Source of the DNA: Phaeosaccion multiseriatum
Lineage: Eukaryota > Protista > Ochrophyta, other classes
Assembly: GCA_965112735.1 (NCBI GenBank)
Contig: OZ218964.1
Coordinates: forward strand, 1,612,001 to 1,676,000
Direction of reading: 5' to 3'
DNA length: 64,000 nt
The translations under genes and the position numbers were made by a program. The notes beneath the pieces are model-generated. The model had not been told where the DNA came from and did no database searches. It was given only the letters and a program-made list of their open reading frames with translations. Below are positions 36,606 to 45,404 of this stretch, one piece after another (within the stretch, counting starts at the first letter, position 1; each line of letters starts with the position of its first letter).

Positions 36606-36923
36606 TATCAAATGGGCAGCGTCACGGCAGGTGCGGCCAAGTGACTGTCCAATCAGGGAGCTGCTGCTCCTCCTGCCTGCAGGGGACTGCTGGTTTGTCG
36701 GCTGTTTTTGGCTCCCACCGCCCTCTCGCGGAGGAGTGGGTATTTTGCTGATACCCAACATGGTCAAGCGCGCAGATGGCAGCCGAAAGGAGGGCGGCGC
36801 TTCTTAAGAGGATCTTAAGAGCGCTTCTCAAGAATAATAAGGCGCTTTGAGGAGACCGGAGGTCTCTCGGCGGCCAGCTATTTCGTCTGCAGTTCTACTT
36901 CTCTAGCTGAAGAGAGAGAGAGG

Positions 36924-36927
<4 letters not shown>

Positions 36928-36982
<55 letters not shown>
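36928..36982. repeat. (GA)n microsatellite immediately 5' of the ankyrin-kinase-PARP ATG
   Basis: Perfect GA tract ending ~10 bp before ATG 36992. Confidence 0.9.
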
Positions 36983-36985
<3 letters not shown>

Positions 36986-36991
36986 AACGTA

Positions 36992-39900
36992 ATGAGGAGC
37001 AGTATTGGGGAGCGATTGGGGAAGCTGCGCAACATTCTAAATGGGGGAGGAGGCGCTCCAGAGGCTACGGAGAAGCTTTGCCAGCTGGCGGCGAGCGGAG
37101 ATGCGCAAGGCATAACCAACCTGCTGGACTCGTTGGGGGAGGAAGAAGCACGCAACGTGATTGTGGCTGCGCAAAGGCCCAAGGACCAGTTCTCTGCCCT
37201 TTGCATCGCGGCCGAGGCAGACAACGCCGACTGTGTGGCTGTGCTCTTGGCTGCTGGCGCTGCTTGCGGCGGGCACCTCGACATTGGGCCGTCTCCCCTC
37301 CTTGTGGCCGTCGAGAAGGGCAGCGTGCACTGTGCGCGACTTCTACTCGATGGAGGTACGTCTTTACTTCGCCCACCTTTGCAAACCAAACTGTTCAGCC
37401 CCTTCCCTCTCAACTCAAAACACTCCCGTCCCCCCCGTCCCTCCCCCATTAGCAGGCGCGAGCCTCAACATCCGCGGCCCTCAGTCAGCGGGCAGCCCCA
37501 CGCTGTTGCATTTGGCCGCATCCAGCGGGAGCGCTGCGGTGGTGCAGCTCCTCTTGGAGGCTCACTTGGAGCACCCTGGGGCTGCAGGACATGCTGACCC
37601 TCGAGCCGTCAACACCGTCACACTGGACACGCCCTTGCACTGTGCCAGCGCCAGAGGAAGCTTAGGTGAGTGAGGAGGAGGCCCGAGGAGGCCCAAGGAG
37701 GCCCACTTGGTTCGCCCCGTCTTGGTCTCGACCTCGCTCATCACATATCCTCCGCCCCCCCCCCCCCGCGTCTTTTCTCTTCTCCAGCCATCGTGGACGC
37801 TCTTATACAAGTCACAGAGGAGGAAGCGGGCAAGCAACTGAAGGACACCGTTGCTCCCGCCTCAGCACCGCACCCGTTGCCTTCGGTCAGGAGCAGCAGC
37901 AGGAGCAGCAGCAGGAGCAGCAGCAGTGGCAACGAAGAGCCAACGAGCTGCTTCCTCAACCTCCGAAACGCCCAGGGCAGCACAGCACTGGCTCTGGCAT
38001 GCTCGAGCGGGCATCACGAGGTGGTTCTTCGACTCTTGGAGGCAGGCGCACATGTGGAGCTCTCAGATAGGCAGCAAAGGACGCCGCTGCTGGTGGGGGC
38101 CTTACACTCCCACGCCCACATCGTTGCCTCGCTTCTTGAGATGGGGGCAGAGTGTGGGGTAGTGGATGTATGGCAGAACAACGCATTGCATCTTGGGGCG
38201 TGTAACCCCGTAGTTGTCGAGCGGTTGCTGCAAGCTGCGGCCGGTCAAGCCAACAAGAAGCGGCAAGTGCCTGGCGGCAGTAGCCGTGAAAAGAGGAGGA
38301 GCAGCGCAGGTCGTGACTCCTTCCTTCATGGACTTGTCAACGGGTGTAATAGATGGGGGAGCTCACCGCTGCATCTTGCTGCGGCGGAGGGCTCGTTGGA
38401 GTCGGTTCGGCTCCTGCTGCGGCGCGGAGCCTCTCCTACGCTTGTCAACAACGCGTGCCTCTCCCCCGGGCGGAGTCCTGTGCTGTTCCATGTGAGCGAG
38501 CAGGCGCAGTCTCAGATCTTCGCGGCGGTACAGGAAGCTGTGCACGGCAGAGCACAACGTTTTGACAAGGGGAGCGGTGCTGTTGCCCGTCGGGGAACCT
38601 CTCCTGGGCCCATGGAGCAATTCGAGCGGGCAAAGCAGTGGGGGGGGCATCTTGCGAGCACAATCCGACGAGCGCTGCAGCCTCTGGAGGAGTGCGTCTC
38701 GCTTCTGCAGGTACTCGAAGGAGGGGAGCAAGGAGAGGGGAGGCGCGCAGAGCTGGGTGACGGCACAGCAGAAGAAGGAGAACGGGGAGGAGACCAAGGA
38801 GGAGGAGGAGGAGGAGGAGGAGGAGGAGGAGGAGGAGGAGGAGGAGGAGGAGGAGACAAGAGGCTCTCGTCGGGCGCGGCCAAGACAGCGTCGCTGGTGA
38901 GGCGTTTGCGCGACATGAATGCTGAAATCCTGCGCAAGGTTTGCGAGGGGAAGAAGGACTTGGACGGCCACGACAATCTCCTGCTCCCTGACTCCCCTCG
39001 ACGCACTGAGACGTCTGTACTGGTGGAGGAAGAGCAAGGCCAGAGACTTTCGCCTATTGTCTCAGACGACATGGCGGCATCTGTCGTCGTTGCGCCGTTC
39101 TCGGCGGCAGTGGCGAAGGACGTCCAAGAGCGGGTAGGGCGAAGAGGGCAGCTGGCGACGACCGTAGCAGCAGTGCTGAAGGAGAACATGCGAGCACGGC
39201 AGGACATGGTTCAGCGCATTGGGGCTCTGCGAGAGAGAATGGTGCGCTTCTTTGGGGCCACCGGTTGGAGGAAGTGTGTGAGTTTGCCACCTGAGGAGGC
39301 TGAGGAGGAGGACCACCACATGCAGCACTTGGCGGGAGGGGAAGGAGGGGGTTACGGCACGGGTGGGAGAAGTAGAGGTGGTGGAGATGCACCAGACTCG
39401 AGTGGGGGAGGAGACGGAGGGGGGTCAGAAGCTTACGAAAAGAGGAGGAGGAGGAGGAAGACGGGAGGAAGGAGCGAGTTTAGCCTGGAGGGAACCGATG
39501 TAAAGGGAGGAGCGGTTGCCGGGGGGGGTGGGTTCGTGCGAGCGCGGCGGCTGAGCTTCAGAGGACTTGGTTCCGGTGTCAGTGTCACAAATGGTACTGG
39601 TACTAGCGCGGCGGAGGCGGGAGCTGCTGGAGGGGGAGGAGGAGGAGGAGGAGGAGGAGGAGGAGGAGGAGGAGGAGGAGGAGTGGAAAATGATGACAGC
39701 GGGGAAGGTAAAGGAGACGACGCTAATGGCGATGAGAGGGGCGACGTTGCTTCGTGGACCGCCGCGGAGGGGAATACGCATGAGAGAGTGGACGCACAAC
39801 TGCACAAGTGTGTCACTGACTTACTTGCGGCCTTGGAGGTGGCGGACAGAAACAGGGTGCTACAGCCGCTGGCGGAGCTGAGAGAGAGCGTGAAGGGTAC

Positions 39901-42900
39901 TCTCATTGACCTCATGGACATTGAAACGTCCTTTCCCAGCGACGAGACGGACGACGAGACGGACGACGACGAGGAGGAAGGGGGGGGGGAGGGTGGGGAA
40001 GACGGTTACAAGGAGGGCGACGAGGGCCGAGGGGGTGGCAATGGCGTCGAGAGAGCGAGGAAGAGTGGCCATGGGGGTGGTGGTGGTGGTGGTGATAATG
40101 ATGATGATGATCAGGAAGGGGAGAGCAGCACCAACGGCAAGAGCCGCGGGCCCGTCTACCCTCTGGGCGAGCACAACAACTCCTTGCGCGAGCTGGACAG
40201 ACAAATCTCCTCTGTGCTGAGGCGCCTCGCTGTCGGGCCCAAGTCTCTCATGCACGTGTACTCAGAGTCGCTTCCCCAGCAGGCGCTGCAACAGCTCAGC
40301 GATGTGGCCAAGGCCGAGGGAAAGGCGGCGGGGGCGCTGCAGGTGGCTTGCTCGCTGGGCGAAAGGCTGCTGTACGAGCTCGACACGTGGAGGAGCAAGT
40401 GCTCCAGCGAAGGTGAGGTCTGCGATATGGGGTGCTTCTCGACAGGGGCTTTCTCTCTCTCTCTCTCGTATGCTCTCCCTCTCGCATCCTCTCCCTCTCC
40501 AGCGTGCTCTCCCGCCCTCTCTCTCCCTCTCTCTCTCTAGCGTGCTCCCTCTCCCTCTCTCTCTCCCTCTCTCTCTCCCTCTCCCTCTGTAGCGTGCTCG
40601 CCCGCCCCCCCTCTTCCTCTCTCCCTCCCCCTCTTCCTCCCTCTCTCCCTCCCTCTCCCTCTCTCTCTCGCTCACGCTCTTCTGGGTGTCTCACAGTGCC
40701 CAAATGCGGTGATTGGTGCAAGGCGCAAAGATGGACGTTACAAACGAGTGGCTAGGGGCTCGGGGGTTGCCGCTTTTCGTTTCTTCCCCGGCGCCCCTCC
40801 TCCCCTTCTCTTTCTCTCTCACAGAAACGCACACACACCCTGCCCCCCACCGCTTCTTACACACACACCCATGCACACATCTACCTATACACATGACCAC
40901 AGGCCGTGCAATGGAGCAGCAGCTGAGCTGGGTAAGCAAGCTCCTCCCCGGTGCGCAGCACAGCGCCCCCGCTGAAGATGCAAGGCGCCGCAGAGCCTTA
41001 CTCGCCCACCTAAGAGCACGGCGGTTGGATGAGGCGGACACTCTGGAGGAGCTCACGAGCAAGCTGAGGAGGAGGAGGAGGCAAGGGGCAGGGAAGGAGG
41101 AGGTGGCGGAGCTTGATGCTGGTGTGGCGAGGAGCAGGGGCAGGTTGACTGGTAAGTGGGTGTGTTGGTGTGTGTGGGTGTGGGTGTGGGTGTGGGTGTG
41201 GGTGGGTGTATGTGTGGGTGGGTGGGTGGGTGCGGGTGTGGATCGGGAAAGTGGGGTTGGGTGCGGGGGTGGGCGTGTGTCCGGGCCTCTCGATGTATGG
41301 ATGTATCCAATGGTTATATGCAATGGGTATGCGATGGAATGTCCGGCGGACCCTTTCCCACCCTTTGTCTTGCTTTGCATATCCTTTGCTCCTTCCCCAC
41401 CCCCTGCCCCTCCCCCTCCCCTTCCCTCTCCTTCTGAACGTTGTGCGCCATGTCGGGTGTGAGGGTTGTTAGAGGCGCGACATGAAGTAGAGAACACGCA
41501 GAGCCCCCTGACCCATGCAATGGACGCAATGGAGGCTCTCAACACATGGCCCGAAGTGCTTCTCGTTGGGCCTTCCTCACTTGAGGCGCATCTGTTGCCA
41601 GTGCTGCGCAAAGCTCCATCAGGAGGAGGAGGAGGAGGAGGTCTGGCGTTGAGGGACTGGGACGAGTACGTGCTTGTCGACGGAGGGGCGACGGGGGAGG
41701 GCGTGTTGAGCGCAGTAGCAGGACGAGGAGGAGGAGGAGCGGGGGGGGGGGAGGGAGGAGGGAGGGACAATGGGGGGTGGGGAGGGTTGGGTTCAGGGTG
41801 CTTACTGGCGCGGCGTGGTGGAGAAATGGTCCTCCTTCGCTGCTGCTCTTCCGTGCCGCAGAGGACCTCTACCTCCCACAAGGTGGGGGGTGGGGGAGCT
41901 GTCGTACAAGGAGAAGCAGGAGGAGGGGGAGGAGGGGGAAGCTTCACTGAGCAGAGGCAATGGGTGCAGCGCGAACTGATGCCAAGCCTCAAACTCCAAC
42001 GCTTCGAGTCCGTGTTGCAAGTCACTGCAGTCGTCACCTCTTCTTCTCCCCTGCCCCTCTCCTCCAACGGAGTAGCAGCCCCGATGGGTCAGGGTCAGGG
42101 TCAGGGTCAGGGTCAGGGTCAGGCTCAAGACCAGAGTCAGGGTCAGGTTCAGAGTCAGGGTCAGGGCCAGGGTCAGGGTCAGGGTCAGAGTCAAGGTCAG
42201 CTATGGATGGAGATGCGGCTCGGCGGTGCATGTGGGAGCGCGTGCACGGGGGAGGTTTGGCTGGAAGACTCGAGCTCGAGCTCCTCCTCCTGTTCCTCCT
42301 CCTGTTCCGCCTCCTCCTCCTCCTCCTCCTGCTCCCTCTCCCTCAGCGGCCCTCCTACCCCCCTCGAGGCGTGGCTGGTGTTCGTGCAGCTGCTGCAGGC
42401 ATTGGTGCACTTGCACGAGAGTGGCGTCAGTCACGGAGCCGTCTGCTTGCAGGTGGGGACATTCGGCTTGGTTGGAGGCGGCGGGGTCTGGTCGGGCTGT
42501 CTCTTGGTTTATTATTTGGAGGAGGAGTGGGCGAGGTGGAGGGGTCTTTTTCTCTCTCCCTCTCTCCATTGCCTAGCTTGGCTTTGCTTTGCATTGCTCA
42601 CCCTGTTCCTCGCCCTCCAACTCACCTCCCTCGGCTGATGGAAACGAAGCCAGCAAACGCCCCCGTGGACGGACTCTTTTCGTCTCTAACCGACTGATGG
42701 ACTGATCGACTGATCGACCAAGCGCCCCCCGCCCTTCCCGCCCTCTCCATCCATACATGCCCCATTAATTTTGTATTATATTCTTTCTCCCTTTTCTTTG
42801 CCCGCTCACCCTCCCGGCCCGCCCCTCCGGCAGAACTGTGTGGTCGTGAGGGCCGTGGCCACAGGTCAAGCCGACGGGGTGCACAAGGCGAGGAGGAAGA

Positions 42901-44086
42901 GCGACCATGCCTTACGTGCCTACCTCAGTGGTCTGGGCCCGTGCCGCCTGCTGGGGGCCGCTCCGTTAGAGTATGTTGCTCCTGAGCTCCTTCAGGGAGG
43001 AGGAGGAGGAAGAGGAGGAGGAGGAGGAGGAGGAGGAGGAGCGGGGTCTCCTGCCGCCGACATGTACGCGATGGGCATTCTCCTCACCACGGCCATGATG
43101 AAGCTCACGGCGGCCCAATTGAAGCAGGAGCAACAACACGAACAACAGTTGGTGATGCAACAACAGCAGCAGCAGGGGGCAGCAGCAGCAAGGACAACGG
43201 CGGTGGCGGCGCAGACCCCCCACCAGCGCGCTCTGTCTCGCCTTGCCGGAGAGCTGTGCCATAAGGACCCTCTGCAGCGCCCCTCCGCCGCAAAGGCCCT
43301 CTCGTCCGAGTTCTTTCGAGTGCCTCCTCGGAGCCCCCCCCCCCGCCGCCGCCGCTTCTCTGCCTCTGCCTCTGTCTCTACCTCTACCCCTTCTCCTGCC
43401 TCTGCCCTGCTTGGCGAAGATGGTGGTGCTTCTGCTGCTGCTTCTGCTGTAAGCAGTGCGGAGGATCTCTTCCCGCATCCTCCTCCTCCTCCTCAGCAGC
43501 AGCAGCAGGAGGAGGGGGGTGAGGAAGAGGAGGAGTTGTTTCCTGTAGCGTGGAAAACAGAGGAAGGGCTTGGAACGACGCTGATTCGAAATGTCAGTCT
43601 CATGTTGGGGAAAGACACCACCGACATGCCCGCGCAGCTCCTCTCTCTGGCGGCTGGGACGGGAGGAGGCGGAGGGGGTGACAATGGGCACGACAGTAGT
43701 AGCCAAGGAAGCAGCAGCAGCGGCAGGGGCAGCGACAGCTTGAAGCTGACCCGAATGCTACAGCCGCCATCGGATTGGTGGAGGGGGGCGCTGCTGATTC
43801 CCCTCTCTCCTGACGCCCCAGAGTTTGGCTTTGTGACGTCCCAGCTCCTCGGCAACAGCAGCAGTCATATGGGCTGCAGCAGCAGCAGTCCTATGGGCAG
43901 CAGCAGCAGCAGCACTAGCATGGCGGATTTCCGCATCGTGTCCATCTTTCGAGTGCAAGACAAGGGCAGGTGGCTTCAGTTCTTGCGCACTAAACAGGGC
44001 ATCAGGGAGTCGAATGCGGGACGGGGGGCGAACGAGAGGCTGCTGTGGGTGGGCCCCAACTCGACAAGCAGCCTCATGGGTACCAC

Positions 44087-44128
<42 letters not shown>

Positions 44129-44526
44129 CAGGAGCAGCAGTGCCTACGGTGGGCTGCTGGGAGGAGATAGTATGCGCTACCCGGCCCCGTGCGTTGACGG
44201 TCGAGGCTTCGACGGTGTGGCGTGCTTGGAGGATGCCAAGGTGGTGTGTGAACACCTTGATTGGGGCGGTGATGATGCAGATGGCAGCAGAGGAGGAGGA
44301 GGAGTGAGCAGAATCGCTGTATTGGCATACGTGGCACTCGGCCGATGCGAAGGGAAGGAAGAGGTGGGACAGGAGGAAAGCTTTGGGGGTGACAGAGCAG
44401 CGCCGAGCGAATGCGCCCTTCGTGTGCCAGAGGACCCGTTCGGAGGACAGGACCTTACAGCCATGACAGGAGGGGGGGGCGGGAGTAAGGCCAACAGCAG
44501 CACCACAACCACCACCACCACTATCG

Positions 44527-44557
<31 letters not shown>

Positions 44558-44786
44558 AGGTGGTTTGGTGAAGCGGCAACTCTTCCACAGTCAGTTTCTA
44601 CCTTTCTGGCCCACAAGTATCGCAGCAGCAATTGGTGACACAGCAGCGGCAGCGGCGGCAGCAGCAGCAGCAGCAGCACGAGGAGGAGGAAGAGCCGCGC
44701 GGCTGCAGGGGTACTACCGAGTGAACCCTCGGCAGGTCTGTCCCTACATCGTGGTCGAGTATCAGAGAGATGTGGTAGAGGTGTAG
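36992..44786 (+). CDS. Ankyrin repeats + helical/coiled-coil region + pseudokinase + degenerate PARP-like (ART-fold) domain; ~6 exons (36992-37355, 37456-37665, 37788-40412, 40903-41151, ~41470-42452, 42834-44786)
   Basis: About 8 ANK repeats (SALCIAA, SPLLVAV, TLLHLAA, TPLHCAS, TALALAC, TPLLVGA, NALHLGA, SPLHLAA). Kinase C-lobe QLLQALVHLHESGVSHGAVCLQN..YLSGLG..YVAPELL..ADMYAMG..DPLQRPSA. PARP-like FRIVSIFRVQD..W..F..NERLLWVG..VLAYVALG..QVCPYIVVEY. Confidence 0.75.
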
Positions 44787-45225: not shown

Positions 45226-45390
45226 CTCTGTCTGTCTGTCTGTCTGTCATGTCTGTCCGTCTGTCTGTCTGTCTGTCTATCTGTCTGTCTGTCTATCTGT
45301 CTGTCTGTCTGTCTATCTGTCTGTCTGTCTGTCTGTCTGTCTTTCTGTCTGTCATGTCTGTCCGTCTGTCTGTCCGTCTGTCTCTCTGCC
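45226..45390. repeat. (TCTG)n tetranucleotide microsatellite between the convergent gene ends
   Basis: Direct inspection. Confidence 0.9.
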
Positions 45391-45404
45391 TGCCCATAAA
45401 AACA

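Follow-up and report, generated by a model that had tools for sequence, protein, structure and literature searches.

Can a single protein carry two enzyme-derived domains that have both lost catalytic residues, placed behind a set of ankyrin repeats? The question is raised by a locus of the ochrophyte alga Phaeosaccion multiseriatum, which was analysed in a window of 64,000 nucleotides with a G+C content of about 58% (contig OZ218964.1, positions 1,612,001 to 1,676,000, forward strand) from a eukaryotic assembly of 67 Mb in 22 contigs (GCA_965112735.1). A preliminary description of the window had proposed a pseudokinase fused to an inactive poly(ADP-ribose) polymerase (PARP)-like domain at positions 41640-44786, behind ankyrin repeats. 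The list of open reading frames (ORFs) and the raw sequence give a six-exon gene on the plus strand at 36992-44786, with 6,384 nt corresponding to 2,127 codons and a stop. It is apparently an orphan gene, and its combination of two pseudoenzymes of known kinds appears to be real and, in the literature found, previously undescribed. We put at roughly 55% the probability that this is one ankyrin (ANK)-pseudokinase-pseudoPARP gene, encoding a non-catalytic scaffold that descends from a PARP-family enzyme.

Domains and splicing of the predicted protein

The PARP-like domain forms the C-terminal end of the protein. The Pfam PARP profile (PF00644) has a cut-off of 26.7 bits and matches below it: the ORF scores 15.9 bits, and a 138-residue piece scores 19.0 bits (E = 0.0011) over profile positions 16-59. 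Genome-wide, this locus is the only place that the profile matches at all (17.5 bits, E = 0.08). When the PARP-like stretch was compared with the PDB by phmmer, tankyrase-2 was the only match other than low-complexity ones (E = 0.19); the alignment pairs GALLIPLSPDAPEF of the window with GTILIDLSPDDKEF and ANERLLWVG with ANERMLFHG. In the ESM atlas, the whole domain finds a tankyrase-1 cluster at the top (0.92) and PARP clusters in 23 of 30 matches, and the C-terminal 207 residues alone find PARP clusters in 26 of 30.

A comparison set (A1) was obtained by scanning metagenome contigs for DNA encoding NER[LF][LF]FHG[ST] and taking open frames that span the whole catalytic domain. Twelve such sequences were aligned, all of which are PARP by Pfam (best E = 1e-30). 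Against this alignment, 356 window residues gave an hhalign probability of 95.0%, with E = 3.6e-8 and a score of 60.6; 240 composition-preserving shuffles scored 14.8 on average and 25.0 at most, and the reversed sequence scored 13.8. Because the motif used to collect A1 overlaps the ANERLL of the window, hhalign was rerun on the part upstream of ANERLL, and the match persisted (84.9%, E = 6.4e-6). A Foldseek search with an AlphaFold2 (AF2) model of the domain, built with a 20-sequence PARP alignment, had PARP catalytic domains as all of the top matches listed (tankyrase-2, PARP14, PARP15 and PARP12), over about 91 columns and with E values from 4.5e-3, matches that are not independent of the PARP alignment supplied to the model. 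The N-terminal half of the domain is securely of PARP type.

The three positions of the catalytic H-Y-E triad can be followed through these alignments. The NAD-binding His is replaced by Val (44049-44051) in the phmmer alignment with tankyrase-2, in hhalign and in hmmsearch, which bears out the equation of ERLLWVG with the FHG position made in the preliminary description. Its second equation, of GVACL with GIYF, agrees with hhalign, where GVACLED stands against GIYFAE and the Tyr is replaced by Ala (44220-44222); MAFFT places a Leu there, and no alignment gives a Tyr. We prefer hhalign for this block because it also aligns the GFDxR-like GGDSMR, and it further pairs RQLLLCRVTIGK of A1 with RIAVLAYVALGR of the window. 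For the third position, the C-terminal piece on its own puts VNPRQVCPYIVVEYQ against YRGEQAYPEYLITYQ in the collinear place but weakly (hhalign E = 0.012-0.036), and when the register of this last strand is extended the catalytic Glu becomes Gly (44709-44711, QGYYRV); the proposal that GYYRV replaces EYV therefore keeps its residue, on a weak match. The maximum-accuracy alignment of the domain by hhalign extends to residue 244. The C-terminal half alone has no Pfam match, and phmmer searches of the PDB with middle and C-terminal pieces gave only chance matches. This half is probably still present, in a degenerate form interrupted by inserts.

Profile searches and structure predictions were run per exon, so that the kinase domain, divided by intron 5, was analysed in pieces. 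All the motif strings quoted in the preliminary description are found in plus-strand frames where it had placed them. The Pfam Pkinase profile (PF00069, cut-off 31.7 bits) matches the query 42834-43430 with 37.6 bits (E = 2e-9), in an alignment between residues 45-161 of exon 6 and positions 161-263 of the profile, the C-lobe only. For comparison by hhalign, nine complete kinase domains of the same genome were aligned (A4). The end of exon 5 (residues 239-267, PTPLEAW...SHGA) aligns to the segment from helix alphaE to HRD, with HGA on HRD (E = 8.6e-4); PLEYVAPELL aligns to the APE segment (E = 3e-4) and DPLQRPS to subdomain XI (E = 7e-10). These three segments are collinear, and the residue at the catalytic Asp is therefore Ala. 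The proposed reading of HGAVCLQ/N as HRDLKxxN is thus upheld, with the Asn as the first codon after intron 5, and so is the kinase identity of the structural motifs APE, DMYAMG and HKDPLQRPS. Retained in the domain are the catalytic-loop Asn, APE, the Asp of subdomain IX and the Arg of subdomain XI. A PDB search of the C-lobe by phmmer was dominated by Gly-linker constructs, and a clean sub-piece found only a weak match to a Polo-like kinase. At the level of sequence, the alignments show that the kinase-like domain has lost its catalytic Asp and the PARP-like domain its His and Tyr; for the PARP Glu the case is weaker.

The ankyrin repeats are real, as the preliminary description had it, but they lie upstream of the region that it assigned to the gene, at 36992-38470. 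About nine repeats in two blocks were counted by eye, and Ank families of Pfam match exon 3 at 1e-16 and exon 1 at 1e-7. The linker of about 650 codons that follows in exon 3 has no other Pfam domain and contains (AGG)20 and (GGA)18 tracts. Introns 1-5 are all GT-AG and phase-compatible, and the exons have no internal stop. At the intron 2 junction, TPLHCASARGSL/A/IVDALI forms a single ankyrin repeat (repeat 5) across the splice between exons 2 and 3. Intron 5 splits the catalytic loop between Gln and Asn, and the HxxxxxxN spacing is restored only after splicing. Junctions 2 and 5 are self-supporting, because the ankyrin repeat and the kinase catalytic loop read correctly only across the splice. 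Exon 6 encodes the C-lobe of the kinase and all of the PARP-like domain in a single frame of 651 open codons; with this composition the probability of such a frame by chance is about 7.5e-10, and none of 20,000 shuffles was open. G+C content at the first codon position exceeds that at the second (GC1 > GC2) in most exon segments, three PARP-like segments being the exceptions, and the introns carry stops.

Known architectures and relatives

The tankyrases (PARP5a/b, PARP clade 4; ANK-SAM-PARP) resemble the window protein in having N-terminal ankyrin repeats, a PARP domain at the extreme C-terminus and no regulatory domain. They differ in the SAM domain that lies between ANK and PARP. No exon of the window protein has a SAM match, and the kinase-like domain stands there instead, whereas in an environmental tankyrase used as control (L050) SAM was detected at 1e-14. 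Tankyrases have 15-18 ankyrin repeats (PMC2964712), compared with about nine here. The window repeats also match generic ankyrins far better than tankyrase ankyrin repeat clusters: in the PDB, generic ankyrins and designed repeat proteins come first at 4e-40, with tankyrase-1 far lower at 3e-17. The tankyrase H-Y-E triad is missing. A particular kinship with tankyrases is not supported, since among PARPs that lack the regulatory domain the window domain is no nearer to them than to others: its identity is 20-22% to three environmental tankyrases and 26-28% to environmental PARP-Armadillo proteins, values that are identities and not a tree. On sequence, "tankyrase-like" is a statement of resemblance in layout (ANK ... 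C-terminal PARP), not of membership.

The PARP-Armadillo family, whose members have the highest pairwise identity to the window domain, was met in the metagenomes (L037:5013-6812:-, L087:2115-5564:+, L105:2678-4861:-, L131:899-3229:-; also L045, L076, L091, L095 and L115). Five of its members (L037, L076, L087, L105 and L131) share with the window domain an LVPL/LIPL first strand, an RVQ...LW helix and a YP.Y...E last strand. Their PARP domain, in contrast, is N-terminal, matches Pfam at 1e-11 to 1e-16 and keeps the His and the Tyr; Arm/HEAT repeats follow it, and neither ANK nor a kinase precedes it. The family has a His at the Glu position (VIHVVYE). Tankyrase-type genes were also present in the metagenomes as single open frames of 819-1,256 codons (L050:116-3883:+, L046:2526-6050:- and L019:1481-3937:-), and the ANK-SAM-PARP order was confirmed by Pfam for L050 only. 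By eye, their catalytic domains closely resemble what we take to be those of animal tankyrases, and the contigs probably derive from invertebrates that host the communities sampled.

PARP domains with a substituted triad are kept for non-catalytic roles in the multidomain proteins ZAP/PARP13 and PARP9. Passages on TASOR (PMC7532188) describe a PARP fold of the same kind, with a substituted triad, kept in a multidomain protein in a non-catalytic role; the likeness to the window protein is one of description. The partner domains of these pseudo-PARPs differ from those seen here, being zinc fingers and WWE, macro domains, or SPOC and DomI. The window protein, moreover, has all three triad positions changed and a heavily interrupted C-terminal half. 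On the kinase side, ILK and plant ILK1 are presented, in passages of two papers (PMC6203859, PMC7949147), as N-terminal ankyrins followed by a scaffold kinase fold without canonical catalytic residues. ILK has about 450 residues and no C-terminal effector, and its likeness to the window protein is one of layout, specific homology not being shown. RNase L/IRE1 share the order of ankyrins, kinase-like domain and C-terminal enzyme-derived domain. They differ in that the window protein has no KEN/RNase domain by Pfam (exon 6 contains Pkinase and PARP only) and its effector is a dead ADP-ribosyltransferase (ART) fold.

True tankyrases are reported from animals only, with the conclusion that PARPs gained ankyrin repeats independently at least twice (Citarelli et al. 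2010, PMC2964712). Further ANK-PARP combinations have been reported, none of which contains a kinase (Perina et al. 2014, PMC4245714). In the literature found, no ANK-kinase-PARP architecture is described, and the statement in the preliminary description that no ANK-pseudokinase-pseudoPARP architecture was known stands.

Word-index searches with the N-terminal half of the PARP-like domain, the whole of exon 6 and the helical region of exon 3 returned no relative, and the PARP part matched nothing in metagenome loci, phage tblastn, PHROGs or NCBIfam. A phmmer search of 1.84 billion representative proteins with 328 PARP-like residues gave a bacterial HYR-repeat surface protein as the sole match; it is matched through repeats, and we set it aside as chance. 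The gene has no paralogue in its own genome, where all matches were low-complexity. Elsewhere in that genome, at G000:C7:266351-291732 (L154 and L164-L167), an identical match to the kinase N-lobe (Pkinase positions 15-147) recurs in at least five copies, in tandem and spaced by about 5.25 kb. Each copy scores E = 1.7e-39 and has one TGA inside the match, which suggests that a kinase gene or pseudogene was recently multiplied in tandem.

Alternative explanations

Several observations weigh against a single gene for a non-catalytic scaffold of PARP descent. The N-lobe of the kinase-like domain (41640-42084) has no kinase profile match and no recognisable glycine loop or beta3 Lys; the string VLLR, proposed in place of VAIK, is present, but this assignment, like that of a glycine loop, was made by eye and is plausible at that level. 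The string GLG (42930-42938), proposed in place of DFG, is likewise present and in a fitting hydrophobic context, but the activation segment would then be short. Between the Asn and APE, hhalign and hmmalign both give no alignment, and ADG (42870-42878) is an equally good alternative, with its Asp (42873-42875) at the canonical spacing of 13 residues past the Asn and with G-V-H-K after it, like G-L-A-K. As read from these letters, the metal-binding Asp of DFG may be retained as ADG. The domain is called a pseudokinase because the HRD Asp is lost, which is the sole basis of the label, and some kinases that lack canonical residues are active. The proposal of an ART fold for the C-terminal region holds for one half: the N-terminal half models as PARP and matches it, with residues 1-90 of the alignment-based AF2 model at predicted local distance difference test (pLDDT) scores of 67-83, but the rest is poor (mostly below 50 in the C-terminal half; mean 48.9). 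The ankyrin part is joined to the kinase part by predicted splicing only. No orthologue or paralogue was found in any collection, a negative that applies outside the genome itself and its very close relatives. The genome context, in turn, speaks for the proposal: exon-wise searches of the genome gave no PARP_reg, WGR, PARG or second PARP match, with no positive control for the PARP_reg and PARG searches; the pattern suggests an alga without canonical poly(ADP-ribose) metabolism. PARPs have been reported as absent from diatoms, a brown alga and Aureococcus (Citarelli et al. 2010, PMC2964712).

Relaxed constraint is the main rival. On this explanation the gene, or both of its enzyme-derived domains, would be a decaying relic, either a fast-evolving lineage-specific gene or a young pseudogene. 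It would fit the loss of catalytic residues from both domains and the fact that half of each (the N-lobe of the kinase, the C-terminal half of the PARP-like domain) is barely recognisable to profiles or not at all. Near-perfect in-frame microsatellites (76-100% purity) inside both domain cores also fit relaxed constraint, their purity suggesting recent expansion, and no relative was detectable among the 1.84 billion representative proteins or in the metagenomes. Decay is harder to reconcile with the 651-codon open frame, improbable by chance, with splice sites that are canonical and in phase, with the codon-position G+C pattern outside the PARP-like segments, and with core hydrophobic motifs that still give E = 3.6e-8 in the PARP N-terminal half and 2e-9 in the kinase C-lobe. 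Every repeat expansion is a multiple of three and keeps the reading frame, as trinucleotide repeats would anyway. Taking both sides together, we regard a decaying relic as unlikely, yet as a possibility to be taken seriously. A separate doubt concerns intron 3, the weakest link of the gene model. If it is left unspliced, the exon 3 frame stops at 40538-40540, and an in-frame ATG at 40911 in exon 4 is a possible alternative start; an ankyrin gene would then end at that stop, and a second gene for the dead kinase and dead PARP would begin at that ATG. We think such a division rather improbable: the donor (AAG/gtgagg at 40413) and acceptor (cacag/G at 40902) of intron 3 are canonical and phase-matched, and about 370 bp, mostly (TC)n, would need to hold a 3' untranslated region (UTR), a promoter and a 5' UTR.

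The remaining explanations question the nature of the two domains. One or both might catalyse with non-canonical residues, as an unconventional active enzyme. The retained Asn (42834-42836) and the possible DFG-type Asp would suit such an enzyme, and atypical activity of the plant ankyrin-pseudokinase ILK1 is reported in passages of one paper (PMC9403797). We consider it very unlikely all the same, with an Ala for the catalytic base Asp, neither glycine loop nor beta3 Lys recognisable, and a PARP triad that reads V/A/G, all small or aliphatic. Presumably this triad is further from the canonical one than those of the inactive PARP9 and PARP13. Alternatively, the C-terminal region would not have an ART fold and would resemble PARP by chance. 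The Pfam scores lie under the cut-off, the PDB match is poor, a single-sequence AF2 model of the domain reaches a pLDDT of only 35.6, and set A1 was collected with a motif that the window partly matches. Even so, the hhalign score is far above the maximum of its shuffles and the match survives removal of that motif; the PARP family is also the one that Pfam, the search of the PDB and the ESM atlas all pick out of thousands. A chance resemblance is accordingly most improbable.

Features of the locus and implications

The features of the gene are collected in Table 1. The start codon is directly preceded by an (AG)36 tract (36911-36983), and (TC)n-type tracts occupy much of intron 3 (40452-40673). 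Downstream, a (TCTG)41 tract (45227-45392) lies in the short spacer before the convergent neighbour gene. Two Pro/Ala/Gly-rich ORFs run antisense to the gene, at 40691-42067 (-, 458 codons) and 43758-44588 (-, 276 codons); we set them aside as apparent by-products of coding sequence that is repetitive and rich in G+C, not genes.

Table 1. Positions in the window of the exons, domains and repeat inserts of the predicted gene
Feature	Position	Strand	Description
Exon 1	36992-37355	+	Start ATG, ankyrin repeats 1-3; Pfam Ank_2 1.4e-7; donor GAG/gtacgt
Exon 2	37453-37665	+	Ankyrin repeats 4-5; acceptor ttag/CA, donor TTAG/gtgagt, phase 1 on both sides
Exon 3	37788-40412	+	Remaining ankyrin repeats to ~38470, then helical/low-complexity linker of ~650 codons
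Exon 4	40903-41151	+	83 codons, no Pfam match; GT-AG, phase 1 in and out
Exon 5	41473-42452	+	Putative kinase N-lobe, helix alphaE, start of catalytic loop; (GGGTCA)19 and (CTC)18 inserts
HGA replacing HRD	42432-42440	+	Ala at the catalytic Asp position (42438-42440), by hhalign to A4
Intron 5	42453-42833	+	CAG/gtgggg ... ccggcag/AAC, phase 0; stops in three frames
Exon 6	42834-44786	+	Catalytic-loop Asn, kinase C-lobe, linker, whole PARP-like domain
Kinase C-lobe	42834-43328	+	Asn 42834-42836, APE 42978-42986, DMYAMG 43059-43076, HKDPLQRPS 43260-43286; (GGA)15 poly-Gly insert
Inter-domain linker	43329-43778	+	Pro/Ser/Gln/Gly-rich; same open frame; no Pfam match
PARP-like domain, N-terminal half	43779-44060	+	GALLIPLSPDAPEF first strand, FRIVSIFRV strand and helix, ANERLLWVG; Pfam, hhalign, AF2, Foldseek
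PARP-like domain, C-terminal half	44061-44783	+	GFDGVACLED, RIAVLAYVALGR strand, QGYYRV, CPYIVVEY last strand; poly-Ser/Thr/Ala inserts; weak support
Stop codon TAG	44784-44786	+	
(GGGTCA)19	42086-42200		Kinase N-terminal half; Tandem Repeats Finder
(CTC)18	42281-42335		Kinase N-terminal half; Tandem Repeats Finder
(GGA)15	42996-43041		Between APE and subdomain IX; Tandem Repeats Finder
24-nt repeat	43852-43912		PARP-like domain; Tandem Repeats Finder
(CAG)17	44090-44140		PARP-like domain; Tandem Repeats Finder
(GCA)9	44527-44553		PARP-like domain; Tandem Repeats Finder
(CAG)13	44641-44678		PARP-like domain; Tandem Repeats Finder

If the gene encodes a non-catalytic scaffold, as we propose, neither domain would transfer phosphate or ADP-ribose. 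The ankyrin repeats would recruit partners, and the two dead domains would offer surfaces for binding or regulation; ILK, ZAP/PARP13 and TASOR are the analogues from which we infer a role as scaffold or adaptor, close to the decoy or scaffold that the preliminary description had suggested. The protein would descend from an active PARP that lacked the regulatory domain, in a genome otherwise without PARP/PARG signal. A more specific role, modelled on RNase L, is that of a ligand-gated sensor in which the ankyrins, together with a pseudokinase that binds nucleotides, would detect a small molecule and switch an ART module repurposed for binding. Its ligand might be made by the product of the convergent gene, a TPR-nucleotidyltransferase, and the sensor would represent signalling independent of NAD and ADP-ribose by the last PARP-family domain of a PARP-less algal lineage. 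A pairing of the RNase L/OAS kind with that neighbour would be an analogy drawn from adjacency and module order only, and we hold a sensor of this type to be highly unlikely.

The importance of the predicted scaffold is uncertain because no relatives were found. Scaffold roles are known for pseudokinases and for pseudo-PARPs, and the presence of both in one polypeptide behind ankyrin repeats is unreported in the literature found. If the gene is expressed and conserved, it would offer a natural case for studying the joint roles of dead ART and kinase folds. If the proposed reading is true, an alga without any other detectable PARP/PARG signal would keep a remnant of the family.

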